The notes under the pieces: generated by a model
What the model was told of the DNA's origin: nothing
What the model saw: the letters and a program-made list of their open reading frames with translations, nothing else
Database searches by the model: none
Program-made: the position numbers and the translations under genes
Shown here: positions 3,000 to 38,481 of the stretch, one piece after another
Numbering within the stretch: the stretch's first letter is position 1
Layout: the number at the start of each line of letters is the position of its first letter
Origin: Monocercomonoides exilis PA203
Taxonomy: Eukaryota > Protista > Preaxostyla
Length of the DNA: 64,000 nt
Direction: 5' to 3'
Assembly: GCA_001643675.2 (NCBI GenBank)
Contig: LSRY02000021.1
Location: 1,178,001 to 1,242,000 of the forward strand

Positions 3000-3830
3000 T
3001 GCATAGAGAATAACCATTTGGCAATGACTGAACCACTTTTTGCTATATGATTATTTGTTGGATCAGCATCCGAAGAAAGTTGGTTATCGAAATGGACAAA
3101 ATGGAATGCAACTCTGATTGGAAGATATGGGATGGTTGTGGAAAAGAAAGTAGCAGAATTGGAAACATTTGCTGTGTGAAACATAGAAATCGAAGATTGT
3201 GAGTGTGTGAATGGAAGTTTCAGTGGAATGCAAGTTGATAATTATCACTTTAAAACATATCACGGAAAAGACTTCAAAAGCGATGAAAAGTGAAACAACA
3301 ATTTCCAACAAATGAAAAAGTGGAAAATACAGCAGAGGGATAACGTTACAAACGGCTGATAACTCTGATAACTACGTCATGGCGTTTGAAAATATTTTTG
3401 GTTATACTGCTTCGTTGAGTGACAACTATCTGTTTGTGAGCGGGAGCAATTCAGCGAGCTAGGCAATAACAACAGAAAAGCTGAATGTCCAGCATGACAA
3501 TTCCAAATACAATGAGCTGGTGGGATATGATCGGAGTGACACAACAATGGGGCTGTTCACATTGAATGTGTTTTTGGATGCCTTTTCAGGAGCAGCACAT
3601 GTGGGGAAGGGGAAGGATGGGCTGGGTGGATAGGACTAATAGTTTTGTGGGTTTGCTTATTATCCGTGTACAACCATCAATTACGATGTACAAGTGTGAA
3701 ATCCAAGAGCAAAAAAGAAAATTGAACTAAATTCGTGGTTTGAGTTAACAAAAGTGATTGTGCTGATAGATTCCTTTGAATGGGATGTGTTTAGAGCTAC
3801 AAAGGAAATAGAAGAAAGTGTTTAAGAAAA
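3000..3830 (+). pseudogene. Decayed fragment of a large surface-protein family gene
   Basis: Reads ELVGYDRSDTTMGLFTLNVFLD...AHVGKG...FCGFAYYPCTTI with several stops; the CG...PCxTI motif also occurs in the 6752-14590 ectodomain. Confidence 0.55.
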
Positions 3831-4004
3831 ATACATTTTGGATTCTTCCATCTTGATTGAGGCGATTCAGAGATGAAGATTCAAACTTAATATATCGTTG
3901 CTATCTGATTGAAAGAAAAACAACACAAGATAATGTTAATTGCAATATATTGCATCTACGTGAAATGAATATAAAACTGATCTGAAATTAGAGAAATAAT
4001 ATAT

Positions 4005-9700: not shown

Positions 9701-12700
9701 CCCACACTGGTTGCTGTCTTCAAACTCCATCGACACAAACACCTGCGGCGTGTACAGAAATGTGATCAGCGGGATGAGATCGATGTCTGAATGTGCTGAG
9801 TCGCTCCCACAGATCGATGTGTTCATGCGCAGCGAGGGCTGCGAAAAGTCAAGAGCGAAAAGTGTTTCGTTGATCTGCTCATCGATCGAATGGCAGTTGA
9901 TAAACACATCCTTCCCCATGAATGCACTGTTCATCATGAATTGAACACCCGCAATGTGAAGAAGGAGCGGTTTGGAAGGGGTTTGAAAGGGAGCATCTGG
10001 ATCGCAAAAGTCCAGCATCATCCCGCCTCCTCTCCCTGTGCTCTCAGAACAAGCACACAACACAAATGTGCAGTTTTTCACTCCCAGGCTCGACTCCTCA
10101 TTCTTCATGTGCATCATCAGCCCTCCTCCTCTGTTGCTTTGCCGGCTGAGGCAGTTCCAGAATGTGCAGTTCTCCATTCCGCACTTCAAACCAGCAAACT
10201 CATCCACACCCAAAAACACTGATCCTTCCTCAGTTCTCGACACATTCTCGACTGTGACAGATGTCATGTTCATTGATGGGCAATCCACTGGCAAATCAGG
10301 TGAATCTCCTAAAGCCAACTGATTTGAATGGAGTCCAGTGGGGAAAACTGATATGAAACTGTCAGAAGAAACAGACGAATTGATGAACGATGTGTTGTGC
10401 ATGTGCGCTGAATGGAAATTGGCTGACAGTCGCAGAAAAGGATTTGCCAGAGACAAAGTCACAAGTGCACAGTGCTCCAGGGAGACATCCCCTTCCGCAA
10501 TGTCAAGCACACACAAGGAAGAAGAAGAAGGAGACAAGGTGTCAGATGGAATGAACCTGCAAAGAGAGAAAGACACCGAATACACAGACCGGATGAATGA
10601 TTTGTGGAACTCATATCTGCTCGGAAGATCGATTATTAGGTTTGAAAAGGAAGCATTCACCGAGTTGGAGATCAGCGAGCCATCATCCGAGGAATCTCCA
10701 TCACCAGAAACGAACAAGTGCACAGCCTCATCACCTCCTTCAACTGAAATTAAAGGCCGGTTTTCATCAGACGGTTTGGAAGGCAGCAAGGATACTGAAT
10801 GTTTGAGCGAAGCCGATCCTTCCACTTTGATGATCGATTTCTCCAAAGCAACTGGAGAGAATCGCATTTTGATCATGTGGTCGATCGAGGAGCATGGCGC
10901 TTCTGAATATCCACATCCACTGAAGCCTCCTCCTTTCTCTTTCGAAACAAACCCTTTCCCACTCCAATTTGACCACAAATACACAACAAGCGGGATCTCA
11001 TATTCTTCTCCTGTTGTCATCCCTTCCCATCCACACAACTCATCCAGTGATTCCAACTCCTCTGAACTCATCTCCCATTTGAAATGATCCTTGTTCACAA
11101 CTTCTCTCAGATCCCATCCTGAAACAAACATATTCTTCCCTTTCCAGGCATTGCATCCCTCAAATGTCATTCCTTCCATCACAAATTTCTCTATTTCCTC
11201 TGGCAATGCAACAAACATTCCTCCTCCCATTCCCTTTCCTCCATCCACAACATCCTCTGATGGAACTTCACATTCAGACAAATTCACATTTTTCATTTCC
11301 AAACTCCCTCCACTTCCAATTAATATCATCATCCCTCCTCCTCTCAGTCCTTCTTCGTTTTTGCACTTTGATGATATGTTCGTGTTTTTGATCGATATGG
11401 TTCCTCCCCCACTCGTTTCCACTGTCATGCATCCACCACTTCCTCCCTCGTTTGCCATCTCTGTCAGCGTGCATCCCTCAACTGCCACTCGTGATGCTCC
11501 ATTCACATTGATTGGCGAAAGTGCTGTGAAAGTGATATCCTCAGAAACAACCAATCCTGTGAGCTCCAATTCACCTCCACTCACATGAATTAACGAAAAT
11601 GCCACAGAGCTTGCAAGAGAATCAGCTGAAAATGCAATCGAAATATTGCTCAAAGAGAGAAAGATTGATGACTGAATAATTGAAGACATTGAGGAAGGAA
11701 GAACACGAGGAAGAGCAAAAGAGAGAAAAGACAGAGAAAAGCTGCCAGAGCACTGAATAACATTGTGGCAGTCAGTGGAGATACTGTCAGTCAAGCCAAC
11801 ATTCACCAAGGGATATTGGCTCGAAGAAGATGATGCAGATGAAGAAGAAATTGATATTTGAGATGTTTGAAACAACGGCACAACAAACGGATTCTTGATC
11901 GATGCTGATGATATCACTTCCACCGAATTCACAAGCTCATTCACTCGCTCACGAACACAGAAGTCGATTGTTGAACAGCAGAAAACGGAATATCCACAAT
12001 GCGAATGATCTGCACCACTCCTTTCGTCAACTGATATGGGAGATTCAAAATCACACAAATACACACACAGTGGAATAACTGGCAACGATGTCCCATCCTC
12101 GCATCCACACAACTTCTCTTCATTATTCATGCAGTTTCCATCTTTGAAGAATCCAAAGGATGCTTGATCAATTATCTCATCCAACAAAAGCCCGCTTCCA
12201 CATTGAACAAACACATCACTTCCATGAAAAGCTTTGTTTGGGTTTTCTTCAGAAAATATCACAGATTCATAAATGGTGAAATCCGATTCAGTCGAATCAA
12301 CATTTATGAACAACCCTCCTCCTCTCCCCTTTTCCTCAAGACTTCCTGCACAACACCCCTCAAACATTGTTGTTCCATTCACAATCAACTCTCCTTTCCA
12401 TTCTCCTCTCATCCCCAGACCACCACCATCTTTTCCTGCTGATACATTCTCAAAAAGGCAGTTTTCAACAACAACACTCCCCGTGGATGCATCATTTCTC
12501 TCAATTATTCCTCCACTTCCTGATTCCCTTTGAATCGATGTGAAGTTTGTGTTCACCACGTGCAACACTGATCCAGACTGATTCACATTGAATGAAATCA
12601 AACTGTCAGAAATGAAATTCATGCCAGAAATTCCAACTCCTGACAATTCCACATTTCCTCCAAATATCTGCATGAAAGACACTTCAAGCAGCAATTTACT

Positions 12701-14590
12701 GTCAACTGATGATATTTCGCATTCCTCCATTGACAACGATCCATCGCCATCCATCACCACAAATGGCTTGCTTGTCCCACTCTCTGCATTCCCTTGCAGC
12801 ATTGTCACTTTCTGAACACAAAACGATCCAGATGCAACATTAATGACAGGCAATGACGATGATGCTGATTGCACAACACATTCATTCTTTGACAATCCAC
12901 AAACGCTGAATTCATTGGATGAAATTGATATTTGTTCTTCTTTGAACACACTTGGTCGCAGGATGAGAGTTTTGTTCGAATTGCTTGTTGATCTTCCGAG
13001 CGAATATTTGATAGAGCGACAAAAAGGGGCAAAACCACACTGCTCATGATCAATGCCAACTGAATAATCGGCTGTTATTTGATAATTGTTCTCATTGTTT
13101 CTCAGCCATGAACTCAGATCTGATAGATCGGTACACTTATAAGAACCATCATTGCATCTTGTGATCCTTGGAGAAGCACTTGATGAATAGCAATCAGAAA
13201 TGTTGTTTTTATCAATCGTCATCCACTGATGATAATATCCAATGTGAATATCATGTCCGTAAGCATTATTTTTTTCTGTATTGTTATGGAAAAGACAATA
13301 TTTAATGTTAATTGAAGGATTATTAATTTCTTCTTCTTCTGCGAAGAATATACAAGGAGCATAGTTACCACTCTTACAATTCTGCATCAAACAATTCGAA
13401 ATCAATATCAATGTGCTAACGTGCCAGATGTGTGTAATTGTTGAATACGCTTCTGAACTTGAGTTGTCGAAAACACATGAAACAACCACACATGGATTTC
13501 TTTGACTAATATCATAATAAAAACATGTTTTGCTATTCGAAGAACAATTTGACACAAAAGTTGAATTAATCATTCCCGAGTCAATATTAATAGATCTGAA
13601 AAAAGCTGTTTCTCCTGGAGACGAACATTCGTACACATTACAATCTTCAGAAACGAACATTCCATTTGAGTCAATCATTGAAACAGCTCCTGCGCAAGTT
13701 TTTGATGAACATTCCAAGAATGAACAACGGTGTAATATTATTGATGCATTTCCCTCAGCGTGCAGAGCACCACCCATTTCATCACTCTGAAAGTTGAATA
13801 TGTCATCGTCAAACACATTTTCTCCTTCTGTGAAAATTTGTCTTTTGTTATAAGTTGTGAAGCATTTCAAAAACGAACAATTTCCACTTCGAAAAGAGAT
13901 CATCGCAGGCGAAAGAATGCCTCCAGAATATGGACTTTCACAACCAATCATCTCCGTTCTTTCCACCAGAACTCTCTCAGAGCATCCATTTCCATTGTCG
14001 CACTTTTTCATTGATTTTGGCAAAGTGATATTTTCGAACAAAGAATCCGATACAGATATTGATGAAAGACAACTTGAAGAAAGAAATGGCTCATTTCCAC
14101 GAACTTCAAATGATGAAATCCTTGAAGAAGACAAGCACAATTCACCACAATGAGGAAGAACTTCCTTTGAATGATGTGCAATCAAAGATGATAATTGACG
14201 ATCATGAACCACAAAATTGAATGAAATATTTTTGAGACATATTCGGCCTGCAGAACAGCCAAGCAGATTTTTTGATTGTGGATGGACAGAAAACGAACAA
14301 CAGCAAATATCCAGTTTCGAATGTGAATCAACTGATGCAAAATGTTTCTCCACGTTCATGAAATATGAAAGTGCAGACAAGTTAATTGTTGAGTTCTGTA
14401 CAACAAAAAATGAATGGTCATTTTCCAATTCACCTTTTTTGCAGTTTTCTTTGCTTGTCTGCTCAAATGATAATCCTTGATTATCTGAACTCAAAATTGT
14501 TGTTGAACAACAACAAAATTCAATTCCATCAATGTTGTTTCCAGAAACCAACAAATAAAACGCGAGGCACCGCAGAATGAGCAGATTCAT
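6752..14590 (-). CDS. Large single-pass receptor-like protein: Cys/Ser-rich repetitive ectodomain, TM helix, degenerate TK/TKL-like kinase domain
   Basis: Uninterrupted ORF; probable ATG 14590 (MNLLILRCLAFYLLVSG, signal-like); GGG-hydrophobic beta-helix-type repeats; TM WPIIVIVLVVILLIVLIIAVAFIV followed by RWRK; kinase C-lobe RWKAPEL, SFSIGIMLWECLTLQIPF, ERPS. Confidence 0.85.
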   Translation of the reverse strand: MNLLILRCLAFYLLVSGNNIDGIEFCCCSTTILSSDNQGLSFEQTSKENCKKGELENDHSFFVVQNSTINLSALSYFMNVEKHFASVDSHSKLDICCCSFSVHPQSKNLLGCSAGRICLKNISFNFVVHDRQLSSLIAHHSKEVLPHCGELCLSSSRISSFEVRGNEPFLSSSCLSSISVSDSLFENITLPKSMKKCDNGNGCSERVLVERTEMIGCESPYSGGILSPAMISFRSGNCSFLKCFTTYNKRQIFTEGENVFDDDIFNFQSDEMGGALHAEGNASIILHRCSFLECSSKTCAGAVSMIDSNGMFVSEDCNVYECSSPGETAFFRSINIDSGMINSTFVSNCSSNSKTCFYYDISQRNPCVVVSCVFDNSSSEAYSTITHIWHVSTLILISNCLMQNCKSGNYAPCIFFAEEEEINNPSINIKYCLFHNNTEKNNAYGHDIHIGYYHQWMTIDKNNISDCYSSSASPRITRCNDGSYKCTDLSDLSSWLRNNENNYQITADYSVGIDHEQCGFAPFCRSIKYSLGRSTSNSNKTLILRPSVFKEEQISISSNEFSVCGLSKNECVVQSASSSLPVINVASGSFCVQKVTMLQGNAESGTSKPFVVMDGDGSLSMEECEISSVDSKLLLEVSFMQIFGGNVELSGVGISGMNFISDSLISFNVNQSGSVLHVVNTNFTSIQRESGSGGIIERNDASTGSVVVENCLFENVSAGKDGGGLGMRGEWKGELIVNGTTMFEGCCAGSLEEKGRGGGLFINVDSTESDFTIYESVIFSEENPNKAFHGSDVFVQCGSGLLLDEIIDQASFGFFKDGNCMNNEEKLCGCEDGTSLPVIPLCVYLCDFESPISVDERSGADHSHCGYSVFCCSTIDFCVRERVNELVNSVEVISSASIKNPFVVPLFQTSQISISSSSASSSSSQYPLVNVGLTDSISTDCHNVIQCSGSFSLSFLSFALPRVLPSSMSSIIQSSIFLSLSNISIAFSADSLASSVAFSLIHVSGGELELTGLVVSEDITFTALSPINVNGASRVAVEGCTLTEMANEGGSGGCMTVETSGGGTISIKNTNISSKCKNEEGLRGGGMMILIGSGGSLEMKNVNLSECEVPSEDVVDGGKGMGGGMFVALPEEIEKFVMEGMTFEGCNAWKGKNMFVSGWDLREVVNKDHFKWEMSSEELESLDELCGWEGMTTGEEYEIPLVVYLWSNWSGKGFVSKEKGGGFSGCGYSEAPCSSIDHMIKMRFSPVALEKSIIKVEGSASLKHSVSLLPSKPSDENRPLISVEGGDEAVHLFVSGDGDSSDDGSLISNSVNASFSNLIIDLPSRYEFHKSFIRSVYSVSFSLCRFIPSDTLSPSSSSLCVLDIAEGDVSLEHCALVTLSLANPFLRLSANFHSAHMHNTSFINSSVSSDSFISVFPTGLHSNQLALGDSPDLPVDCPSMNMTSVTVENVSRTEEGSVFLGVDEFAGLKCGMENCTFWNCLSRQSNRGGGLMMHMKNEESSLGVKNCTFVLCACSESTGRGGGMMLDFCDPDAPFQTPSKPLLLHIAGVQFMMNSAFMGKDVFINCHSIDEQINETLFALDFSQPSLRMNTSICGSDSAHSDIDLIPLITFLYTPQVFVSMEFEDSNQCGKQDNPCRSVSHGVRHVQAGLFNAICVDSSSVVAEPTVVSDLTLKSITKHQSAIHFNSSIEEESEGSWIMLFENECLVEDCLFSFDEHFSAEHTAIMKQLNGSLAFSGCTLQSSSVESTLNSSVIVVEGGVFEMEKSSICVMGTAQPLFLFKSGSAATLNQIEISTIKTTATAMIVESSASVNIMQLAASDVVLCGENFISLAKGKNQHVSEKDAGEKVVLQMGISSFSNITSSNSSSSNSHVVESACEKTRSQLLNCSFERCFTPSEKGSLVEISSGASLSLQSCELIGCEDEHQSEKNGADEDVCKWTGSLVDVCEGLLEMKDTSITNSSKGGLSISGGSAVIESCLFENNSKSIERYRSARRNVFCTGSGTLNVVDLKGGDGWERNTSLWILNEGCKLLGIAAERSSEFFIPTLKSVETTQKEDIVELTFRGTLLLPCNLGFQIVSKINNVSSIETHAFAEDEFVSEEEVQGKIGSSLVSSAPTEAEVAVCILFGHVSNPSSTEPFVLKNKSESEPKGDEKIVEGGKKEKSIWPIIVIVLVVILLIVLIIAVAFIVRWRKQKRRTKDLREIVNDTVRKDPKLIEMVTMEMSPEDQWRRAEREAEKKNEERMKKRVYEKSLGHSESSEHLLSESDSTEYILGRDSDKIPEWMLEKVDEKEEEEEVRKGSPSPSISSTSTTDTSDTESTFVRGEDLCPTTSSMSNLVDAMACSSPHEKLIVDLRDSMFMLLHGRNEKKEMAIGTLQEREQTAAQILFWVANLALRSFDEMENPLQSLSNLSPHVVLFSEHMVICIVMHSDCSSSSDDSDSSSISSTTTIATSSSDCSCANGNGRGSPPPSSAFEDDDDNRKECMRWKAPELMMNKNMGATKSSVSFSIGIMLWECLTLQIPFGEYEAEVAGKKIVNGERPEMGMAEESTLGGVLKNCMLQTPSERPSLVILKREFIQRFPAGAVVMTVSDAVDIDDETGDCEESNFSSLIEQ

Positions 14591-16783
14591 AGAATGCGAA
14601 TTCTCCTCAATTTTATTATGGTTCTGAAAGAATAATCTCAATTATGGTTTGTTTCAATAAAAAAGTCTTTTTCTTTCAAATCGAGAATTTGACAATCTCA
14701 GTCCAATTAGATTATGAGCAGTTGTAATCAAAGAAAAAGATAGATAATTATTCGACTGGAATTGGATTAATTGTGAAAATAACAATTCATCAATGATCCA
14801 AATGAAGAAATTCCAAACAATTCCTTCTGCACAAATCTGTATCTGTGAATTAACAAATAAATAATTGAATTCCGTTCAAAGAGCACTTCAAATTAATCTC
14901 TGTTGTGGTGGTAGAAAAACATTCCAAAAACCAGAAGACAAATTTTGTTTGTGAATATCTTCAGATGTTTCATAAATTAGTTTTGTTGGTTCAAGAAAAC
15001 GTTATCAACAGAATTTCACATGCATTAGAACCACATCTCCAAAAAAGTCGTTGAAGAAGAAAAGTTGAAAGAACATGGTAGCCGAATAAATGAATTAGAG
15101 AAAATGCGCTCACAAATGGAATACATCAGAAGTTCTGTGAATTCCTCATATGAGTTCAATTCGAGGCATTTTTTAATATTCATTAATATTTGCATTTCAA
15201 GAATATATTTTTCTGTTTTGATCATTTCTCATTATGAAAGTGTTGAATTTGAAAAATATTGAAATTGCCAAATGTGAGCAGCTGAAGTTTGTACTGTTTT
15301 AATAAAACTGAAAACATCTTCTTTTGTTGATTGGGCATCTTCGCAATCATGGTTTGGTGTGACTGGATTCATTCACCAACGAAAAGGATGAAATCTGAAA
15401 TAAAGCTTTCCTTTCTTTTCAATGGACAAATGATGCGTTTGTGATTTAGGTTTTTGTGCACGGAGATAAAGAAAGAGAGCTATGATTGAATTTTGAAACA
15501 GAAATGTTTGTTGCTTTCATGCTTCTTCAAAATTGTGAAAAGAATATCTCATTCACTCTGAGTAACGTTTTGATAAGGATCAAACAAATAATGGAAGTTG
15601 ACTTTCCAAACATGTGCCTCATGTGGATCAGCAATTATTCATTCAACTGAAAATTTGTGCAATGCTTCTTTGCTCAGAGTATTTGAGAGCCAGAATGATC
15701 AAATGCAGAAAGCAGAAAAAACAATCTGGAGGAAAACAAGTGTTGCAAAAGGCGAAACGATTCGTTATTGATTGAATGAAAGTGATTTTTTCCAGTTTGA
15801 ATTGAAGCTCATCAGTCGGATTGTGTTCTCTGAAAAGATTGTTGGCTAATGAAATGAATGTTTGAGATTGGTTGAGAAAAATAAAGGAAGCGTGGATTTG
15901 GAAGAAGGAGAGAAAAGAAAAGAAGTGAAGAGATGGAGGAAATGAGACAGCAAATATGAAGACGGCATTTCAGAAGCGATGAAAAAATAAAAAAGGTGCT
16001 CTCATAATCGATGAACGAACAAAATTGATGCGTCGTTTCAGTTCTGTTGAAAACTGTGAGAAATGTTCTTGATGATGTATTTTTTAATGTGATGTGCAAT
16101 GTGTGCTATTTTGAGAGCGCCGATGAATGAGAACTTTCAAATACGATCTCTTTTCAAATCCATCAAATGAGCAGGGAAAATTATGAGAAATCAGACCATT
16201 ACTGATGGCTTTTTGAATATTTTAACGGATTTTGAAAGAAAGACCGAACATGTGTGAAAAGCACTTTTTGTGAAGATATTTGATCTTGGATTTGAATTTT
16301 ATTTTCATTTTTCTTTCTTTCTTTCAGAAGATCATATGACACTTTAACTGACTGCCTTTTTGCCAACATATTTCCTTATATGCTTTGTTATTGAATCCAA
16401 AGCAGATGGAAAATGTTCAAAAATCCGTAAAAGAGGATTTGCCATTCATGATTTTCCCTTCAAAAGATGAGGATTTCTGTTCAGTGGAAGAAGATATGAA
16501 GAGAACAGCAAACATCGACCACAAACAAAGAGAAAGGAAGACGAAAAGTGCAAGTGAGAGATTTCATTATCTCTCAGAAATCCATTGGAAGCGGTTGCTT
16601 TTCTGAAGCGATTCAATGATGATAATAACAGATTTGTTCAGAACAAACAAACTATTTTGCGCCTGTTCAGCGAAAACAAATCAGCAACCAAATTCGAATG
16701 AAATAGCATAAATCCTGATTTCTGAACAGCTGTTATTACGTGTTCCATATGACAAAAAACTGAATGGAGAAATTTTGACTCTT

Positions 16784-20384: not shown

Positions 20385-20871
20385 TAAAATATGGGTTTTT
20401 AATAGATTCAATTAACAATTGGGAAGAATTTTTTTGATTCATGAATTTTGTTCCACACAATCCTAACAAAGATTTTTCTCAACTTTTTTGTATTTCACTG
20501 TTTTTTTGCAAAAGAATATCAGGATTATTATTACGCGATTGCAGAATAAGTTTTGAACAAATCATTAATTTTATCTTAAATGCATGAATTTTGCCCCAAT
20601 TTAATCCTTGACAAAAAATGATTGGTAAAATATAACAATTCAAAATTAAAATGTATCAAAAATTCGAAAATTTTATTGAATAATCTACAAACTAGTAACT
20701 ATTTTCCTAAATTAACATGAAATAAATAATATTTTCCAAGGAAGTAGTTTTTTGTCATATATCGGATTTCTTAAACTTTTTCTTAGATAATAGCATTATT
20801 TTTTTAATTATGAGAAAAAAGATGAATAAAAGAAACTCTTTCAGAAATGTGATCAATCCCACCTTTTACAA
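20385..20871. promoter_or_regulatory. Putative bidirectional promoter region between the ankyrin and LeuRS-like genes
   Basis: 487-bp AT-rich gap between divergent start codons; inferred from position only. Confidence 0.4.
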
Positions 20872-22508
20872 ATGTCAGAGACAGAGGGTAGATCCTTTCC
20901 TCTTTCTCTGCGTGCCTCCCAATTAAAGTCCCAGCAAAAGTGGGAAATAGAAAATGTATTTACAGTGCATGAGAGTTCGGATCCGTATGCGGAAAAATAT
21001 TTTATAACCACTCCAATGCCATACACTGACTCACTAATGACTTTAAATCGGGGATATGCTCTTGTGAAGACGGATATTCGCGCAAGCTATCAGGTGCTAA
21101 GAAAGAAAAAAGTTTTATTTTCAATGTTTTTCCATTTTGGTGGAACAAGAATCCAGGTTTTCAAATCATTATCATTGTACCTTTGTACTGTAACCTATCA
21201 AAATTTTTTAGGCTCGCGCTAAAAAACTCAAGCAGGAGATTATCGGAATGGATAAAGAAGCTCCAAGGATGCTAATTGTATCTGATAGAACAACAGAAGC
21301 AATGTCTCGAAAGGAACCTGAAAAAACATCAATGAATGTAACCAAACTTTTGACGCGCTGTGGAGTTCCTGCTTCAGAAATCAAGTTATTTGTTGAACCT
21401 CACCATTGGTTGGAGTACTTTTCTGATCGTCATACGGTTGTTATTCATCAAATTTTGAAATTGTAATTTTTACAATATTATTTCTCAAAAATGTTCTTGT
21501 TCTTGTTTTTATTTATTTTCGAAGGAAACATTGGTTAAGCTAGGTCTTCGTGTTGACAAAAATAGAATACAGTTAATGACTAGAAATAATCCTTTCTTTC
21601 AATCCTTTATTGATTGGCAGTATCAGGTTTTATATCAAGAAGGGAGAATTAAAAAAAAAATTATACCTGTTATATGGTCCGAAGTGATGGAACAGCCGTG
21701 CCTCGACCACGACCGCCTACAAGGAGGTGATGCACATCCTAAGGAATATTGCTTATTGAAGCATCGGTTGCTCGAACTTCCTTCATCTATAAGCATTGGA
21801 AACAATAAATGGAGCCTTAAGCAGATTAACGAATGTCAAATCTATTGCGTGTCAGCTACAACGCGAGTGGAAACACTTTGGAACCAGATTGGTTTGTGGG
21901 TGCAGCCATCCTGCCAGCTGTATGGCCTTTGTGTGGACGAGGGATTTTTGTCAGAGAAAGCTTCTCGTGCCAATCGAAAGCATCAGAAAAACGATCAGTC
22001 TTCAACTGCCGCTTTGAAAGACGACAAAACAGCCTCACCGGAAGCGAAAGAGGGCTCGCCAAAGGACGCAAGCGCGGACTCCTCTCAGCAGGCGCCTGTG
22101 AAGCGGATACCACACACAGTGTTTATCTGCAACGAGCGCGGGGCAATGAACATATTCAACCAGCTGTGTGTGCGTGATGCCGAGAGAGGGCGCAAGTGGA
22201 AAGAGCGGGTGGTCTTCAAGGTGTCGAGCGACGATCTGTGCGGCTGCCGCATCGAGCCGGCCCTGTGGTCACACTGCATCCAGCACGCGCCTTCCACTCT
22301 GTCTTCGATCTTGGCCTCGGAATCTGATTTGGGATCTGCTTCTGGATCTGCTTCAGGCTCAGCTTCTAATTCTGATTCTGATTCTTCTTCTTCGGCATCA
22401 TCGCAATCATCCACACCAACATTAACAGCATCCGCAACTGCGACTGTCTCTTCTTCCACTACTTCTCCATCCAACTCTTCTTCTTCTTCCTCTTCTTCTT
22501 CTTCCTCT

Positions 22509-22540
<32 letters not shown>

Positions 22541-25500
22541 CTCACCATCTTCCCCTTCTCCTTCATCTTCTCCTTCATCTTCTCCTTCAATTGCCTCTGA
22601 TGCTGAGCTGAAGCGCATCCTCACTCGATATAACGGCCCCTTCCTTATTATGCCTGGTAAGTTTATTCTCTCCACAAAGGGGACAGCCTTTGTGGAGATG
22701 TGTCTGGGAGACAACTGCGACCAGCTGGCAGAGTGGAATGCGCGCGAAATAAAGAAGAAGAAGAAGCTGCAGAACGGACTACTTGCGAAGGAGGCTGGGC
22801 AGAAGCTGTCAATGAATATGAATATGAACATGAATATGACTCATTCACATCCACAATCGCATTCACATTCGCCTTTTGCTGTTTCTCCGCTGAGTCTGGT
22901 GAATGCAGATGACATGCTGGTTGGACTAAGGATACAAGAGAGAGAAGAAGCGTCAATGAATTCTGTGCCTTCTTTCAGTTCGATTGGTTCAGCTAGTCCT
23001 TTGAAGCCTATTAATTCAGCAGAGATCGAATCACAGGAGAAGAATGAGCAACCTTCTTCTTCTTCTTCTGTGAAATCAGATTCACACTCCGTTCCATCCA
23101 CTTCTCATCCGCTCAACCTTCCTCTGTCATACATCATTGAGAGAGAAAAAGAAGTGCTTGAAAAGCGTCTCCAGGAATTCAACTATGGCGCAGAACATTT
23201 AATTGACGCCTCAATCATCGTGCCTTCAGATGACCAGATTTCAAAGGCGTCTGTTGCAGCTACTGCTGCTGCCACTGCTGCTGCTGCTTCATCTGCCTCT
23301 TCGTCTGCCCCTCCTCGTTCTGTCTCTTCTACCATCTCCCCTTCGCCGACTCCTCTGCAGAGCACTCAGCAGAGCCGGCTGGCAGCGCCTGTGGTTGGCT
23401 CCTCTGCTTCGCCTGCTCCTTCAAATGGAGGTGTGGCTGCTGTTACTGCTGCAAATACTGTTGCTACAAATCAAAATATGGGAATGCCGGCAAATTCTAA
23501 TATGAATGTGAACATGAATGCGAATGTGAATGTTAATTCTAATACAACTGATGCTAATGTTGTTATGCTTGTTGGCATGGGTGATGCTAGTGGTGCCGCG
23601 AATGGAGTAGCAGCAAACAATGGAAGTGCAAATGTTGTGCAGGAAGATAACCACAGAGTAACATCTGAAATTGCTCCAGCTCCAATTCTGAAGCCATCCA
23701 AGTCAAATGAAGCATTGGATACAAAGTCATTCTCATCGCCTTATTCAAATATAAATTCTTCATCTTCCTCTTCTTCCTCTTCTTCTACTTCTACTTCCTC
23801 CTCCTCTTCTTCTTCCTCAAATCCATCTAATCCTGACCCTAATCCTAATGTCATCCCATCCATCACTAATGCCTCAGATGCCTGCACAACCATATTCATG
23901 CCCCGCCCAACCAATCCGATCTCTCCTTCTCTCGGCCCTCTCTACAGCCCCACCCCTCTTTCTTCTCCTCCTCCTCTCACCACTTCTGTTTTATCTTCTT
24001 CCTCTTCTTCTGCTTCCTCTTCTGCCTCTTCTGCCTCTTCTTCCTCCTCCATCCCTTGCCAATCAACCACATCTACCTCCACAAGCTCATCTAGCTCTGC
24101 TTGCCCAACAAACGCAGGCACCACAGCAACAGCAACATCAACATCAACAGCGACAGCTGCAGCCACTGCGATGGGAATACCTGCCCCTGTCTCTTCTCCT
24201 CTGACGACGCTGAATGCTCAGCTCATTTCGGTCTTTCAGCGGAAGCCGAACACGTTTTTGACTGCAGATTCGGCTTTGCGCCGTGCGCAGAAGAAGAAAG
24301 AGGCAGAAAAGTCAAAAGCAAAAGCAAAAGCGAATGCGGGGAAGGAGGAATTTGAGAGGGGAAGCAGAAATGAATATAATAACAGAAATAGAACAGGAAC
24401 TGGAGAAGAGAGAGAAAATTGCACAGACTCGAAAAGAATCAAACATGATTCATCTAATTCCAATCAAACAAATCTTTCTTCTTCTTCTTCAGGTGATCTG
24501 CCTGTGTCTTCACCACTTCATCTTGTTCACCCCAGTTCATCCTCCTCCCTCGATTCACCAACAACATCTCGTGTTTTCTCTGACTCTTCAATTCATTCAA
24601 CACCCAAAAATACTCTTTTGTCATCATCATCTTCTTCTTCTGATGTATTCACTTCATCTTCTGACGCCACCATCATTCCCCACCCTCTTCGATCAGAATC
24701 AAATGCTTCTTCTTCCTCTTCCTCTTCTTCTCCTCAGCCCTGCACCGACCACGAGTTTTACGCCAATCTCTATCGTTCTGTCGTCGAAGATGCAAAGTCC
24801 CTTCTCTTGCACCAGTCATATGAGCACGGCATTGTTGTGGGCGGGCCATGTGCTGGAATGAGTGTGAAGGACGCTCGCACATACACACGCAAGTACCTGT
24901 TGCCTGCACGTCCTATTTATAATTGTAATAATAATGGTAATAATAATAATAGAAGTAATAATAATAGTAATAATAACAGCCCTTCTGTTGGTGCTAATGG
25001 AGTATCAACCGATACACTGCATTCAGAAGGCAACCGTTTTGTGACTTCTTCCACTTCACCTTCTCCCTCATCTTCATCTTCGCCTTCGCCTTCTGTTTCG
25101 CCTTCTTCTTCTTCTTCTTCTTCTTCTTCTTCTTCTTCTTCCTCTTCATCTTCCTCATCCTCTTCCTCTTCCTCATCCTCATCCTCTTTTTCCTCTTCAT
25201 CATCCTCCATACGTGAACCTCCTCTTATGTATTACGAGCCCTCCCGCCGCACAGTCTCTATCACTGGTGACGAGTGTGTCGTTCGCTTGTCATCTGAATG
25301 GGTGCTGAGCTATTCAGACGACGACTGGAAAGAAAAGGCAATGACATGCTTAGCGCAAATGAACTTCCCTTCACCTGATTTGAGGCTGAGGCTGAGCACA
25401 TCGATATTGGCAATGAGGGACAGGCCGTTTACACACAGAATGGGGCTTGGGTGTGCGTTGAGGTTGAAACCTTCACAATATCTGGAGGAAGAGAGAAAGA

Positions 25501-28500
25501 GCAGAAAGGCAGGGGGAAATGAATGGAGGGATAATGAATATGAATGCGCCAATGCTAATGATGCTGTTGATGATGATGAGAAGAAGAAGAAGAAAGAGCA
25601 GAAGGATAAATCGCTTGATTCTTCTGGAGGGAAAGACAGTCAAATATCACCAAGTGCTAATGAAAGCTCTGTCAATGATTCAGATTTCTCTGCTTTTTCG
25701 TCTGATGATGACGAAGGTAACAGAAAGAATAAAAAACATATGTCTTCTCAAAATAACGGCAAGGATAATGATGACGATAATGACAGTAATAAAGATAAAT
25801 GCTCTGATTCGAAGCATTCACCATCCCCTTCTTCATCCCCTTCATCCTCCTCTTCATCTCAACCCTATCCAGTGATTGAGACGCTGAGTGACTCCACAGC
25901 CTATCCAGTGCTGTACACCATCACTCATCTCTTGAACAGGGGAATCTACACAGGCAATCCTTCCATGCCTGTCTTTCGCATCTTGCCTGAACACCTCACG
26001 TTTGAAGTGTGGGACCATTTGCTGAGAGACACGCCATTACCTGAGGGTTATTACGATGGCTCGTATTACAAGAAGCAGCAGCTGGAGAACATGAAGGAGA
26101 AGAAGCTGCTGATGATGAATGGAGAAGGTGTGAGTGAAAAAAGTGGAGGAGAAGAGAATGGGAAAAAAGAAGGCGTAGAAGAAGCAGAAAATGGAAAGGG
26201 TGAAATGACAAGCAACAGCTTTGGACAAGAAACACCAGGAAAACAGGACGAAATGTATCCAGACGCAAACGATGCAGTGCATTCAGCGCTGTCTTCCTCG
26301 ACACTTTCGTCTGTTTCCTCTCTTTCCTCTCCTTTCCCATCTCCAATTTCCACGTCAACATCTTCTGATCCAACCACATCATCGACATCATCATTATTCC
26401 CATCAGCTTCCTCACCGTATTCTCCATCGGCTAATGCCAGCAACGAGCCAATCGTTCTGCCTGAGCCTGTGATGGCGCTGCTGCGTGCGACAATACGATA
26501 CTGGCTCCCAATGGACATGGAAGTGATGGGGGTGCATCTGGTGAATAACCACTTCCTGTACACCCTTTTCAATCACTCGCTTCTGTTTCCTCCTTCTTTC
26601 TGGCCGTGTGGAATGGCGCCTGTGGCTGAGATGACAGCCGAAGGAAAAGACACGCACGTGACATCGATGTCATACACACCACTTTCTGTGGTGTTGGAGA
26701 GGAATGGGCCAGATGCAACGAGGCTGGCGATGATGCGGGCGAGGAGAGTGAGAAAGTCGGTGGCGAGGGAGTCGTGGCTGGCAGAGAGCATGCAAAAACC
26801 GAAGGACACGAAGCAAACAGGTGGGAAGAGCAGCAATGGAGGAGGAAGGAGCAAACAAGGAAGCGACAAAAACGAACACAAGAAGGAAGAAGACGAAGAT
26901 CCACACATGTCCAGTTCTTCCTCATCGTCTGGTCCATCGAAGGGCATCTCTTCTCTTCATACACCTCCAGTTCTGTCTTCTCAGGTAGGTTCATCATCAT
27001 CCTACTCATCATCCTCCTTTGTAGCGAACACAGAGCAGTACAACCTGTCATTCAGCGAGGAGATTGCGAAGGAGATGAACGAGATCCTGTCGAAAGAGCT
27101 GCGATGGATGGAAGAAATCTTCCGAGTAAACCAGCGCGTGCGAGTGACGACTCTCACACAGAGCGAGTTCGATGCGATTACACAGCAGAACTTGATCACC
27201 ACAGTCACAAAGCCATCGCAAGAGGTTGAAATGCAAATAGACAAGAATGTCTCAGACACATCAATGAACTCATTAAGAGCAGAAAAGTTGGATTCGCAGC
27301 AAGAGAATCTTTCAGCTAATGAGTCCGTTTCATCTTCTACTGAAACACACAAAAAGATCATGTCTATTTTCGAGCCACCGAAGGAATCGCAATCGCAATC
27401 GCAATCGAAGAAGTCGTCTACTTTCTCATCTTTGAACTTCAATTCACTCAATCCTGAGTTCTTACAAATCACTTCAAGCAATAATTCAGCATCTGATGAA
27501 GCAGTCAATTCATCTTCTTCCTCTTCATCTTCCTCTTCTTCGGATGCGCAAAGTCTGCTGTCTCCATCCGGAAGCACACCACCTCACTCGCCTGGAAGCA
27601 GCTACACTCCATCTTATCTATACAAGGATACCTCTCTCCCGGCTCTTGCTCCAAAGGCATCTGAATCAACACCTCGGCATCTGGCATCACTTCAGCTCCC
27701 GTCTAACTCTTCCTCCACTGTCCCTTCGCCAAACGTCTCCTCTCGCAAGCGCCTTATCCCAGCTCGCTCGCGCAACCAGCTCTTTTCGCAGAGGTCTCCA
27801 AGCGCTTCCTCGCGGATAATGCAAGCAGCATCCCTGGCATCCCCTTCTTCTCCTTCGGTCCTCTCCAACTTCTCGCGCACTGACTCGTCTCCTTCGATAC
27901 CCTCAATGTCGACTGATTGGTCAGCACATTCTTTTTCTGACGGCGAGTTTCTGTACGACGACTACGAAGAAGAAGAAGAAGAAGATAGCGAATTGATGAA
28001 TGTTGTGTCAGAGGAAGAGTTCACCGAAGACAGCGGGGCCAGTGAAGACAGCGAAGGCAGCGACAACAGCCGCTCAGACAGCAGAAGTGTTGCGTCTTTG
28101 TCTGATGCGCTTTTGAGTGAGTCGCCTTACTCGTCGCAGGAAGATGAGGACAAAGCGTCTGAGGGATATCGCAGCCGCAAGCATCCACACAGGAGCAAAG
28201 CATCATCCAGTCTGCCTCCCGAATCTGTGTTATCAACTCAAGCGCACTTAGATGCTGCTCAGGAAGGCGAGGCAAGTGGTGTGTGTGTGGCGAAGACTGC
28301 CAATGAGAGGACAGGTTCTTCGCTGTCGGTGAGCTACAAGCGGCAGCAGAGGAAGATGGAAGATGAGCTGATTGAGCAGCAGAAGATGTGGACGTCGCAC
28401 ATTATGAAGATTCTGCAGAACCCAGAAACGTTCGGAGAGCTGAAGCAGAGCATCCAGTTTTCAGAGAATGTGTTTGACGCGCAGATCAACTCGGCGCTGG

Positions 28501-30923
28501 GGACAGCAGAAAGATGCTACGACGAGAACAAAGAAGAAGAGGTGGTGGAGCTGATGCTGGGGCAGCTGCGGCGCTGGCGGGACGGCTATTTGAGGAGGTG
28601 CGAGGTGATTGAGAGGGAGATGAGGAGGATAGCTGTTGAGGTCATCATCACTGAGTGGAAGGTGTGGAATCAGCAGCAGCAACAGGCAGATACAGCAGGT
28701 ATGCCTGGCGAATCTGCTGCTCGTTCACTGCAGTCGCTTTCTCCCAGCCAAAAGGAATACCAAGCTACCACTTCACATTCGGCAACCGATTCAACTTCTG
28801 CTTCTTATCGGTATTCTTCTTATGCCTCTTCATTTTCTCCTTTTTCATCAACTAAGTCAAATAAAGATTCGTCTGAAACGCTTGAACTGATTAATGCGTT
28901 GATGTTTACTTTATCTCCACATCGTCACTTCCATCGTACACACCAAGAAAACTCTTCTTCCTCAAGCACTTCAATGGAATCTAGGCGTTCTCCGCTTACT
29001 CTTTTCTATGCTTCTTCTCCAGCAGATTCTCCATCTATCCGCCTTCCTTCCTGTTTGATTCGTCATCGCTCGTCCAAAGTCAAACTCACTTCACGCCCAA
29101 GCACAGAGTCCACTTCACCTCCTGTTTGCACGACTATCAATTCAACTGGCCTGCATTCATCGGAATCTCCCAACGGCTCTCTCTTCCACTCTTCCATTGC
29201 ACAGTCCCCATCTCGTTTCCCTGTTGTGATGCAGAAGGTGTCTATGCAGATGCCTGAAGAACTCAATTCCTCCATCAAAAAGATGCTGCATGTGCTCAAC
29301 CGGAGGCTTTTACGGAGGTACAGCTATGTGCTGAGTGTAGCGCTGAGCCCCATCTGCCCTCATTTCTGTGAGCATGTGTATTCCACCATTCTTCGCAGAA
29401 GAGGATCTGTTCGTACAACGAAGTGGCCAACAAACGCAGGACAGTTTGAAGATGTGCTGAGTAAAGACGATGCGTTGATGAGGACAGTTGAGGATATCAA
29501 AGAGAAACTGAGGAAGAGGGAAGCTGCATTGGGTGGAAGGAAAGGGAAGAAGGAGGCAAAAGTTAAAAGCAATGTGTCATCAAATGGTGGATTGAATTCT
29601 GAAAACAATGGAATTGAAAGTGCAGATTCTCAATGGGATAACACTCTTGTTCCGTCTAATCCAATGAATATCAATCCACCTTCGACTACATCAATCACTG
29701 TGGTTGTGTATGTGAGGGAATCGATGACAAGCGAAGAGAAAGAAATTCTCTCTGTGCTGGAGACAGTGTGGGCGGAGCATCCGTCTGCGGACGAGTGCGA
29801 GAAAGAAATGCGATACAGAATGCGAAGTTTGATTCCTGGATTGGTGGAGAAGAGAAAGGAAAGAGGAGCAAATGTGATTCAAGCAATGAAGGAGATGATG
29901 GAACAGGAGGAAAATAAGAGAAAGTTGGAAATGGAGAAAAACAAAGAAAATGCCAACGAGGAAATGCAAGCAGCATTGCAGAGACAAAACATGATATCAC
30001 AGACAGAGAAATCGAATAGTCTTTTTGTTGTTTATTCAAAGCCTAGTGTATCTTTCAGCACACATTCAGATTTGGTGAATCCTTCTCCTGTGAGTCTTCC
30101 CCCGAACTCTTCTTCTTCTTCTTCTTCTTCTATCTCTTCCCAGTTAGGTATTCCTCCTCCTTCTTCGTCTTCAATTCCTATCACATCAGCCTCTAATCTG
30201 CTTCCCTCTGACCAAACAATCCAGCAGACCAGCCAAGCAGAAGAAGCGATTGAAGAAGTTGCTCATACAAAAACGGAAGATGAGAAAAGGGAAGAAGAGA
30301 ATCTGTTCCGCGAGGTGATGCAGTTTGTGCGATGGGTGCTGTCGAACGATGGGCAGATTCTGATGGATGTGATGGAGCGTGGGAATTGGCAGAAGGAGGA
30401 AGGAAACACCATCGCAGATCATAAGCAACTGATTATGGGAAGCTGCAGAGAATGTATCATGTGCAGATGCAGGAAAAGGGAGTGGCTGAAGGAACAGTTT
30501 CAGAAAAGAGAGACGTTGCGCCTAGAAGTTGAAAAAGAGGAGAGCGAAATGGAACAGAAAAGCGCAGAAAACAAAGGAAATTTGGAAGAGTCAGCTGCAG
30601 AGAATGGAGCATCAGATGATTCTAGCCGTGTGAAAAAAGAGAAACAAAGAAAAGTTAAGAGGCTTATGAAGAAGATTGCGTATATCGATGGATTAAGGAG
30701 TGCTGGAGGCGCTTGGTGCGATACTTGCTGTGTTTCCCACCTATTTGTTCTGAACGACTCTATCACACTTCCCATTTGGCTGCAAACGAAGACAAAGATG
30801 AATTTGCTTCAACAGGAAACTCTGCGACCTCACCATCGTTTTGTTTCTGTCATAGAATGCACACCAGAAGAGATTTCACTCTTAACTGATTTGGAGGCAC
30901 ATTCACTTAGCAAGGCAGTATAA
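20872..30923 (+). CDS. Divergent cytosolic-type leucyl-tRNA synthetase paralogue (~3302 aa) with degenerate catalytic motifs
   Basis: Exons 20872-21156, 21212-21436, 21525-30923 joined in frame by GT-AG introns; collinear LeuRS blocks FITTPMPY, HWLEYF, NPFFQSFIDWQ, QPCLDHDR, ATTRVET, KGTA, YYEP...DECVV, GLG, IETLSDST, YWLPMD...LVNNH, GPDATRLA, LSPICPHFCEH...WP, separated by Ser/Asn-rich inserts. Confidence 0.9.
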
Positions 30924-35993: not shown

Positions 35994-38481
35994 CAATGAG
36001 TAAAAAACCCGGGACATGGTAAAAAACCCGGACTTTTAAAAAAAAGAACTTTTTTCTTTCATTGAAACATTAGCTTGTTCAAACAAAATTTTGACCAATG
36101 AAACATTTGAAGTTGGAATGTTAAAACTATTCAAAATATACAATGTATTTCTTCTCTTCAAGTGTGGTTCACTTGATAGAATGATTGATTAATATTCTTT
36201 TTTTGTTGTTGAAAATTCAAGATAAAATTTAGCAAATATCTAGAAAAAAAAATTATCATTCCATCACTTGGACTGCCTTTTGTTTGTTTGATTGTATAGC
36301 CTTTCAAACAATATTTTTTCCATTTTGATCCTTCCCTTTTTTGTGATGGAAAAGAAATCCATTTCTTCAGAAGAACTTCAAAGGATTGCTGCTACAAGAG
36401 AATTCCGCACAATCCATTCCAGATCGAGGAAAATTTTTGAAATCAAGAAAACATATCCATTGACAGTGAACGTTGCTGTCAAAGCGAAAGCAATAACAAG
36501 GCAGGCTTGGTACAGTGGCAAAACAGCTGAAAAGGAAAACGGAGATGTTGGAAAAGAAGGAAGACCATCTCTTATAAATTCTGAAAAACTGGAAAAATTG
36601 AGAATCAGGTTTTGTCTTTATTATCAGAAGGAGTTGTAGTTCGAATGAAGCACACACAGGAAATGGTTTTCGTTTTTTTTTATGTAAATTTTTTTATCTT
36701 TGTTTTTTTAGGCAATTAACATTTTAAATACGGAATCAACAAATGAAGAAGAAAACGAGAAACTCCATCCGAAATTATCTTATTATTTAGTTCAAAGAAG
36801 CTTCATATTAAAGGCAGCCCTAGCAAGACCGCTTGAAATTGCAAAAATTCGGTCACAGAGCCCTGAAAGTGTGACGAATTGGTTTGAAGAAGTGAAAGAA
36901 ATCGTAGAAGGAAACAATATCGAAGTTTCCAATATTTTTAATTTCGATGAATCTTCTGTTCAAATCGGAGAAAGTTCGTCAAAGTTGGTCATCTGTTTGA
37001 AGGACCAAATCCCTCCTTCTCCTCCTGAGCCTCGAAAATCTTCAAACGCGACTTTATGTATTTGCGTGTGCTCAGATGGTTCTCATCTTCCTCATTTTTT
37101 GCTTTTTCCAAAGAAGAAAATACCAGAAGAATTTTCTAATTTAAAATTTTTTGATATTAACTATATTCCTGCACCTTCAGGATGGATTACCACTGAAATT
37201 TATAAAATCATCATGCTTCAAAATTGGATTCCTCTCATTCATCAAAAAATCCAATCGACATCTTCGAAAAAGGCTCTCCTTCTTCTTGATAACCATTCGA
37301 CCCATACATGCTCAGATGTCATTCGTGAAGCAGAAAAAAGCGGAATCTTCATCAAAAAGTTCCCTCCTAACATGACACATATCCTACAACCATGCGATAA
37401 CGTAATTTTCGCCAGATTGAAAAGAACGTTAAACAATAATTACAAAGTCCCTTCGGATGATTCATCTTCGTCTTACAGAAAGGCACTTGCTGAGGTTTTA
37501 CCAGACGCAATCTCCGCAGCAACCACTCCTTCAGTAATTAAAACTGCTTTTCTGAATACAGGAATCTGGTCACTGGCAGCTTCGCAAGTTCTATCAAAAA
37601 TAAGTGGATCACCGTCAAAATCTTCTTCCATAACTTCTTCAGATGAAGCAAAAAAGGAACTATTTGATTCTTTCTCACCAAAACGGAAAATCAAATCATC
37701 AAGAAAGTATAAAATGGATATTAAAATCGATGAAAAACATAGCATTGATGGATGCACACAAACGCAAGATAATTTATTCAATGACGAAGATCACCGTACC
37801 AATTCTGATAGTAGCAATTTTACCAAAAGAATCATCAGAACAAGAAAGAAAAAAATTGACAGCGACTTTATATATGAAGATGACGAAGATTATGAAAAAG
37901 ATGAATGGAAAAGTGAGCATAAGGAAAGCGCAGAAGACACAACTCAATTTGAAAGCAAAAAATTTAAAATACAGCATGATGATAACGAATAGATGGAAAT
38001 ATTAATTAGTTTGTTTAATAATTCTTTTTGTTGAAAATCATATCCAATTTTTTGCCCAACTTTTTAATATTTAGCTTGAAATTAATTGTTTGTCTTGTAT
38101 TGAATGTTTGATGTAATAATTTCTGTTATTCTTATTCACTGAATTCAGAAAAGACAAAGGATGGAATAAACCGAGCATCGGATTGGAAGAAACTTCCGTT
38201 GCGTCTGTATCAACTTTCATTTTATTTAAAAAAATATCACATCAACAATTTTGACAATTTGAGAAATACCATTTCACATTAACATCTATGAATTCGTTGA
38301 AATAATACAAAAATTGTATTTTTATGCAATTCTCAATTCAAAAAATCTCAAAATATTTATTAATTACTGAATAAAACATAAAACATATCGGTCAATTGAA
38401 CATATTTGAATGAAACAAAATGCAGTTGCAATATTCAAAAAGTCCGGGTTTTTTACCATGTCCCGGGTTTTTTACTCATTG
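35994..38481 (+). mobile_element. Full-length pogo-like DD35D transposon (family B), 2488 bp
   Basis: ~44-bp perfect TIRs CAATGAGTAAAAAACCCGGGACATGGTAAAAAACCCGGACTTTT; TA at 35992-35993 and 38482-38483. Confidence 0.95.
36346..37992 (+). CDS. pogo-family transposase (DDE_1-like, DD35D) with one 1-bp frameshift in exon 1
   Basis: ATG 36346, intron 36666-36711, FNFDES / LLLDNHSTH / QPCD with 35 residues between the last two Asp; A5 instead of A6 at ~36593-36597 relative to the sister copy. Confidence 0.85.

Follow-up and report, generated by a model that had tools for sequence, protein, structure and literature searches.

A gene resembling leucyl-tRNA synthetase (LeuRS), in which the residues that normally carry catalysis are replaced, was examined in Monocercomonoides exilis PA203, an oxymonad living in the gut and lacking mitochondria. 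It lies on contig LSRY02000021.1 in a window of 64,000 nt, the whole stretch of DNA that was analysed, and all positions below are window coordinates. The plus strand carries two open reading frames here, 20872-21222 (116 amino acids) and 21531-30923 (3130 amino acids). When all GT..AG combinations were tried, one frame-consistent model colinear with LeuRS was obtained, with three exons encoding 3302 amino acids over 20872-30923 (+). We refer to it as the pseudo-LeuRS gene, and its parts are as follows.

Exon 1, 20872..21156, plus strand: 95 amino acids that make up the N-terminal Rossmann half, former HIGH loop included, ending at a splice donor seen in RNA.
Intron 1, 21157..21211, plus strand: 55 nt, GT..AG, absent from RNA contigs in four of four runs.
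Exon 2, 21212..21436, plus strand: 75 amino acids, the LSD1 region of cytosolic LeuRS (boundaries as in PMC7229842).
Intron 2, 21437..21524, plus strand: 88 nt, GT..AG, absent from RNA contigs in four of four runs.
Exon 3, 21525..30923, plus strand: 3132 codons and a stop, comprising the CP core, CP1, CP2, the second Rossmann half, LSD2, the SC-fold, the helix bundle and the C-terminal domain.

Exon 3 has no in-frame stop, as opposed to 68-176 stops in each of the other five frames, and the chance of a stop-free run of 3132 codons, estimated from base composition, is about 1e-70. A preliminary description of this DNA had proposed a spliceable reading frame of ~3302 amino acids with no stop in a 9.4-kb exon; the GT..AG model arrives at the same length with the exon fully open, and RNA contigs confirm both junctions. 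The RNA data came from four RNA-Seq runs of one 2024 study, with contigs compared over 20750-26700, and 92% of sampled words from that interval were present in the runs. Each run gave an RNA contig on 20874-21154, 21210-21435 and 21524-22468 with zero mismatches and both introns removed at the modelled GT..AG sites. Contigs span 21524-26700 with 0 mismatches, breaking only at masked Ser-codon repeats, and those of 5.7-6.0 kb begin at 25202 and extend more than 4 kb beyond 26700, enough by length to take in the stop codon. The gene is expressed as spliced RNA, and the long inserts described below belong to the mRNA; contig depth gives no ranking of expression. Apparent junctions within exon 3 (e.g. 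23070 to 24621) were rejected as repeat artefacts, since their anchors are 18-23 nt long and their ends, which fall at Ser-codon repeats, are non-canonical. The RNA contigs start at 20863-20878, between 9 nt before and 6 nt after the ATG at 20872, suggesting a very short 5′ untranslated region, with the proviso that contigs cannot define transcript ends. The gene itself was not returned from public protein sets by word-index or exhaustive search, and it may be absent or mis-modelled there.

Searches and folding were run exon by exon. For comparison we used a canonical profile hidden Markov model of 1067 positions, built from 36 full-length LeuRS with HxGH and KMSKS. Exon 1 matched it with E 4e-18 and aligned with human LARS1 residues 6-95, exon 2 matched positions 138-182 (E 4e-10), and exon 3 was colinear with positions 187-1042 of 1067 (E 1e-89). 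Together the three exons span positions 14-1042 of 1067, with catalytic, CP1, helix-bundle and C-terminal parts in the order expected of a LeuRS homologue. Against the PDB (phmmer), the best match of exon 3 was human cytosolic LeuRS, with five blocks in order (E 2e-47); Pyrococcus LeuRS matched less strongly, and exon 2 alone had no match. The ordered blocks and the colinearity across exons agree with the preliminary description, which had reported cytosolic LeuRS blocks in the correct order. LSD1 and LSD2 are eukaryote-specific LeuRS insertions (PMC7229842); exon 2 is the equivalent of the former and exon-3 residues 1450-1525 of the latter, and the gene therefore descends from a eukaryotic cytosolic LeuRS and not from the bacterial-type mitochondrial enzyme. 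An origin as a mitochondrial relic was ruled out by the presence of LSD1 and LSD2 together with the lack of bacterial-type LeuRS matches.

About a quarter of the protein is LeuRS core and the Ser-rich remainder is predicted to be disordered. In exon 3, 748 of the 3132 residues align to the profile, and the other 2384 fall in ten inserts of 46-832 amino acids with 24% serine. The only Pfam match above threshold in the gene is an anticodon-binding domain. RBD_LARS1 found no match, and gave a sub-threshold match (E 0.002) in P0002, one of the relatives introduced below. The following features lie within exon 3.

22272..24767, plus strand: the largest profile-unaligned stretch, 832 amino acids inside CP1, rich in Ser, Ala, Thr and Asn and containing the small conserved editing-site island at 22677-22724; it is present in RNA, with no junction there that has canonical ends.
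29301..29519, plus strand: Anticodon_1 helix-bundle domain (PF08264), E 1e-6, above the gathering score.
29694..30044, plus strand: weakly conserved C-terminal domain, profile positions ~927-1042, colinear with the canonical tRNA- and RagD-binding domain.

An AlphaFold (AF2) model was made of exon-3 residues 1231-1740 from an alignment of 34 sequences; its predicted local distance difference test (pLDDT) values were 85-96 in the conserved islands and ~30 in the inserts. The modelled islands matched human LARS1 with Z 13.3 (194 residues, root-mean-square deviation 4.1 Å) and P. horikoshii LeuRS with Z 12.9, while IleRS reached Z ≤ 7.9. Past the last profile-aligned residue is a C-terminal extension of 292 amino acids with two Cys-rich motifs, CRECIMCRCRKREW at 30444-30485 and WCDTCCVSH at 30714-30740, which are absent from the Blattamonas proteins and could form a metal site.

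To place individual residues, we used printed PDB alignments and profile columns with 94% conservation or more among canonical enzymes, with residue roles taken from PMC7229842. The segments carrying the nucleotide site, the editing site and the leucine pocket read as follows.

21013..21051, plus strand: former HIGH loop, PMPYTDSLMTLNR where the canonical enzyme has PYPYMNGRLHLGH; the Tyr54 equivalent is retained and Tyr52 is Met.
21040-21051, plus strand: Thr-Leu-Asn-Arg in place of His60-Leu-Gly-His63 of HIGH (His60 to Thr, Gly62 to Asn, His63 to Arg).
21693..21716, plus strand: CP core segment QPCLDHDR, with the His251 equivalent kept.
21852..21875, plus strand: threonine-rich editing segment SATTRVET, with the Thr293 and Thr298 equivalents retained.
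22677..22724, plus strand: editing-site segment KGTAFVEMCLGDNCDQ, in which the equivalent of the invariant Asp399, a residue of the editing salt bridge, is Gln (BLAST alignment to the relative P0001).
25881..25919, plus strand: leucine side-chain pocket segment TLSDSTAYPVLYT, with the Leu594 and Ser597 equivalents kept.
26526..26552, plus strand: GKD segment MGVHLVNNH (canonical SGKDLxxNH), Lys675 to Val and Asp676 to His.
26649..26663, plus strand: DTHVT in place of Lys716-Ser720 of KMSKS; the surrounding loop, EMTAEGKDTHVTS, is conserved in the Blattamonas proteins P0002 and P0152, which have EMTVEGRDPHMTS.

Three further segments are altered: Met-Asn-Gly before HIGH is Thr-Asp-Ser, TGMPI is GGTRI, and Asn-Gly before KMSKS is Val-Ala (Asn to Val, Gly to Ala). 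The preliminary description had read PYMNGRL-HLGH as PYTDSLM-TLNR at 21040-21051 and KMSKS as DTHVT at 26649-26663, and both readings hold with exact coordinates, TLNR standing opposite human His60-His63 and DTHVT opposite Lys716-Ser720. Moving the KMSKS alignment by one residue gives KDTHV, which likewise is not KMSKS, and canonical motifs do not emerge on either profile or PDB alignment. Neither HIGH, KMSKS, the GKD aspartate with Asn-Gly, nor a full editing site, each expected of an active enzyme, was found. HIGH, the GKD aspartate, Asn-Gly and KMSKS are the groups by which class I synthetases hold ATP, the GKD aspartate and Asn-Gly belonging to the ribose/base site of the nucleotide, and every one of them is replaced. 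At profile column 396 (Asp399), 100% of canonical sequences have D, and the three Blattamonas proteins have Q. By these alignments more of the nucleotide side has been lost than first listed, and less of the amino-acid side. It would follow that canonical formation of leucyl-adenylate, tRNA charging and proofreading are impossible for this protein.

The gene is not alone. When protein collections were searched exhaustively with residues 1-260 of exon 3, only three close matches were returned, P0001, P0002 and P0003, while a word-index search for giant-length homologues found P0001 only, P0002 appearing in the exhaustive search. P0001 (2379 amino acids) and P0002 (KAK2953501.1, 1760 amino acids) are Blattamonas nauphoetae proteins, both named 'putative Leucine--tRNA ligase', and P0152 (1800 amino acids) is a third B. 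nauphoetae paralogue, 61% identical to P0002, with the same three-exon layout and a 75-amino-acid exon 2. In all, this layout was seen in two of the Blattamonas genes, compared over their first exons. In the B. nauphoetae assembly GCA_033064195.1 there are three giant LeuRS-like paralogues (L001, L005 and L006) that carry the leucine--tRNA ligase annotation yet are without HIGH, KMSKS or the editing aspartate, and the public names of the Blattamonas relatives are probably misleading. P0003 is a 250-amino-acid metagenome fragment encoded on contig L004, where matches to the peptides of exons 1, 2 and 3 follow one another in the same order. That contig (ENA ERZ28654170 scaffold_36096, 131-1329 and 1549-4059) carries the first three pseudo-LeuRS exons with the same degenerate HIGH loop, but its frame stops ~140 residues into exon 3 and an 837-amino-acid ankyrin-repeat open reading frame comes next; it could be a truncated copy, contain a further intron or be a chimeric assembly. 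Scanning metagenomes with an alignment of the family's N-terminal part turned up 13 loci, each of which proved to be an ordinary class I synthetase with HxGH.

All five sequences, contig L004 included, carry P-[ML]-P-Y-[TAS]-D-[SV]-L-M-[ST]-x-N-R-[GA] where the canonical enzyme has PYPYMNGxLHLGH, and the four full-length proteins (the M. exilis gene, P0001, P0002 and P0152) have nearly all of the listed substitutions in common, the KMSKS-loop replacement of P0001 being different from the others. In a FastTree phylogeny of 841 aligned columns, these four proteins form one clade with support of 1.0 and a stem of 0.93 substitutions per site, with terminal branches of ~1.0-1.1 substitutions per site for the M. 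exilis gene and P0001. Branching within the clade has a support of 0.49. The M. exilis gene scores 311 bits to P0002 and P0152 versus 176 to P0001, and it has the loop EMTxEG[KR]DxHxTS in common with the former two, so P0002 and P0152 look like its nearest counterparts. The Blattamonas proteins share nearly all derived motifs with the M. exilis protein but are 1760-2379 amino acids long as opposed to 3302. P0002 and P0152 retain the Tyr and Arg of YPxDLR, and the C-terminal domain of P0002 is detectable below threshold, whereas the M. exilis copy is more degenerate. Judged from its sequences, pseudo-LeuRS is a multi-gene oxymonad family conserved between two genera.

If this protein cannot charge tRNA, a second enzyme has to, and finding it to be the only LeuRS in the genome had been named beforehand as grounds for abandoning the idea. 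A conventional LeuRS is on record for M. exilis: according to a row in the supplement of PMC10703272, MONOS_2389, 'leucyl-tRNA synthetase', has Daphnia LeuRS as its best match with E = 0.0. Against canonical LeuRS, the giant pseudo-LeuRS proteins score no more than 164-284 bits, and MONOS_2389 should therefore be a different, conventional gene. A second, presumably canonical LeuRS is thus on record. A search with Barthelona LeuRS (P0025) found no oxymonad among the 120 canonical LeuRS matches listed, and cluster look-ups of 20 matches gave no canonical oxymonad LeuRS. We infer that a separate canonical LeuRS serves translation. The alternative is that the pseudo-LeuRS protein is itself a working LeuRS with non-canonical motifs, used perhaps under a certain condition or for a certain tRNA-Leu isoacceptor. 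All LeuRS domains are present, Tyr54, His251, Leu594, Ser597 and the editing threonines are kept, and GenBank labels the Blattamonas relatives 'putative Leucine--tRNA ligase'. However, His60, Gly62, His63, Lys675, Asp676, Asn-Gly and Lys716-Ser720 are all changed together, the editing Asp399 is Gln, the species has its conventional LeuRS on record, and the branches are very long; a working enzyme of this kind seems to us very unlikely.

Loss of catalytic residues could also be the beginning of decay, and conservation within the family bears on this. When 15-residue windows are ranked by within-family conservation, the former HIGH loop comes first, with 83% identity between the M. exilis gene and Blattamonas and 33% to the canonical consensus. 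Between P0002 and P0152, the LeuRS-homologous columns have a proportion of synonymous differences (pS) of 0.75, which is saturated, and a proportion of non-synonymous differences (pN) of 0.19; pS over all of exon 3 is 0.765 and pN in the inserts is 0.45. We report pS and pN instead of synonymous divergence (dS) because synonymous sites are saturated and neither NG86 nor YN00 dS could be computed. On the Blattamonas pair, then, the measured pattern indicates that the dead core is under purifying selection. The derived residues are held across four proteins ~1 substitution per site apart, and the catalytic residues were lost before the Monocercomonoides-Blattamonas split, their replacements having been retained since. 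The preliminary description had allowed that it would be wrong if the gene were unexpressed with a non-synonymous to synonymous ratio (dN/dS) near 1. Spliced contigs occur in all four runs, non-synonymous change in the core of the relatives is low against saturated synonymous sites, and the phylogeny with metamonad orthologues it had called for, metamonads being the right group, gives one well-supported clade with conserved derived residues.

A decaying relic, that is, a transcribed pseudogene in which stops have not yet accumulated, would fit with three quarters of the protein being low-complexity insert, with the C-terminal domain being barely recognisable, and with the additional losses in YPxDLR (Tyr to Leu, Arg to Glu) that are not found in P0002 or P0152. 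It fits poorly with an open frame of 3132 codons beside 68-176 stops in the other frames, precise splicing, derived residues common to the family and held across ~1 substitution per site, and relatives in which synonymous sites are saturated and non-synonymous change is low. We consider decay extremely improbable.

What the protein does instead may be guided by what has been kept. PMC7229842 names five residues that line the pocket. Four are retained as the equivalents of Tyr54, His251, Leu594 and Ser597, which form the leucine side-chain pocket, and the fifth, Tyr52 to Met, is a conservative change. His251 adjoins bound leucine in human LARS1 (PMC7229842). Phe50 is Thr in the pseudo-LeuRS protein. 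A LeuRS-type leucine sensor, as LARS1 and Cdc60 are in their moonlighting role, should have an intact leucine pocket and a surface that binds Rag/Gtr; the gene offers four of five pocket residues, and RBD_LARS1 is unmatched in the gene and sub-threshold in P0002. A rebuilt and conserved nucleotide subsite, a mostly kept leucine subsite and a whole synthetase body argue for a ligand- or RNA-binding role over decay. The nucleotide subsite would have given way to other residues, a new group of Arg, His and Asp that is itself conserved, and the old active-site cleft would still bind a ligand, making the protein a binder, sensor or scaffold. The likeliest ligand would be leucine or a related amino acid, tRNA might be co-bound through the retained helix-bundle and C-terminal domains, and the long disordered Ser-rich inserts could act as platforms for interaction or phosphorylation.

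The rebuilt cleft motifs are Thr/Ser-x-Asn-Arg, Gly-Thr-Arg, Gly-Val-His and Glu-Gly-Lys/Arg-Asp-x-His, and they could also be taken as the mark of a repurposed enzyme, in which the cleft catalyses a different reaction or uses another nucleotide or acceptor, like PoxA, GluQRS, MshC and the cyclodipeptide synthases. In favour of this, no window of the family is more conserved than the former HIGH loop, the replacements form a specific, common pattern unlike random decay, the cleft has acquired basic and acidic side chains, and many synthetase-like enzymes with new chemistry are described in the review PMC9437257. Yet the change of the HIGH Gly to Asn and the loss of both KMSKS lysines and the ribose-binding Asp remove the usual class I nucleotide site, the differing KMSKS loop of P0001 means that there is no family-wide catalytic constellation there, and the full tRNA-synthetase architecture is retained, which a small-molecule enzyme does not need. 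We regard a new catalytic function as improbable.

Taken together, we think it likely that the gene descends from eukaryotic cytosolic LeuRS, is expressed and kept by selection, does not adenylate, and belongs to an oxymonad family of giant pseudo-LeuRS genes. The proposal of the preliminary description, that the protein cannot aminoacylate but is maintained, is supported by the replacement of ATP-site residues, the spliced RNA and the purifying selection seen in relatives. A more specific version is that oxymonads moved the ligand-sensing role of LeuRS into dedicated giant genes, whose products would work outside translation as regulators or as sensors of leucine or tRNA-Leu, with the leucine pocket and synthetase body kept and the ATP subsite rebuilt as P-M-P-Y-T-D-S-L-M-S-x-N-R, G-V-H and E-G-K/R-D-x-H; this is possible but speculative, and we would not expect it to prove right in full.

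Several points weigh against a maintained, non-adenylating protein. Natural class I enzymes tolerate some variation in HIGH, as in Bacillus TrpRS, which has TIGN. The conserved rebuilt loop could in principle support unusual chemistry, and the loss of aminoacylation is read off the residues themselves. Leucine binding is uncertain because Phe50 and Tyr52 are changed. Selection was measured on relatives, the Blattamonas pair P0002 and P0152, and the evidence for expression stands at the RNA level. Lastly, the record of a canonical LeuRS in M. exilis is a single row of a supplementary table (PMC10703272).

Elsewhere in the window, a 2629-amino-acid giant open frame at 6752-14641 on the minus strand has a C-terminal kinase domain (PF07714, E 2e-9) as its only Pfam match and may be another inflated protein. 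There is a DDE_Tnp_4 (Harbinger/PIF-like) match at 4767-5945 on the minus strand, slightly below threshold with E 5e-5, and a DDE_1 (pogo-like) transposase domain at 36871-37992 on the plus strand (E 1e-16). ARAGORN found no tRNA genes in the whole 64-kb window.

The closest comparison is with human LARS1 (PDB 6KID/6LPF) and yeast Cdc60, which have the same order of Rossmann fold, LSD1, CP core, CP1, CP2, LSD2, SC-fold, helix bundle and C-terminal domain. Compared with LARS1, the M. exilis protein is ~3x longer through its disordered Ser-rich inserts and sits on a very long branch, and HIGH, GKD, Asn-Gly, KMSKS and the editing Asp399 are replaced while the pocket residues, Thr293 and Thr298 are kept. 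Additional LeuRS copies are also found in archaea. As summarised in PMC9437257 from Weitzel 2020 and Fang 2014, LeuRS-I of Sulfolobaceae is still able to make leucyl-adenylate and to bind tRNA-Leu but unable to charge the tRNA, and haloarchaeal LeuRS2 charges weakly. As far as that summary goes, these proteins are like the M. exilis gene in being an extra copy beside a working enzyme, with a disrupted editing domain, a divergent C-terminus and a presumed role outside of translation. They differ in that the archaeal proteins keep the ATP site, are of normal size and are single-copy, whereas in the oxymonad family, in a eukaryote, the ATP site is erased and there are several paralogues. HisZ, the HisRS-like domain of GCN2, insect SLIMP and the trypanosomatid TyrRS pseudo-dimer are cases where a synthetase fold without catalytic residues is under selection and reused for binding or regulation (in part after PMC9437257).

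Our literature search for a eukaryotic LeuRS pseudo-enzyme, for these oxymonad proteins, or for a LeuRS with a leucine pocket and no ATP site found no description. To our knowledge, none of HisZ, GCN2, SLIMP and the TyrRS pseudo-dimer is derived from LeuRS, and none is a giant protein standing by itself in which a signature loop has been rebuilt and then conserved. Synthetase-derived pseudo-enzymes are already known, and the new element here would be one derived from a eukaryotic LeuRS. The family may be seen as a natural separation-of-function variant of LeuRS, with an amino-acid site and without adenylation, and as such it is directly relevant to a matter under debate, the way in which LeuRS senses leucine independently of tRNA charging.

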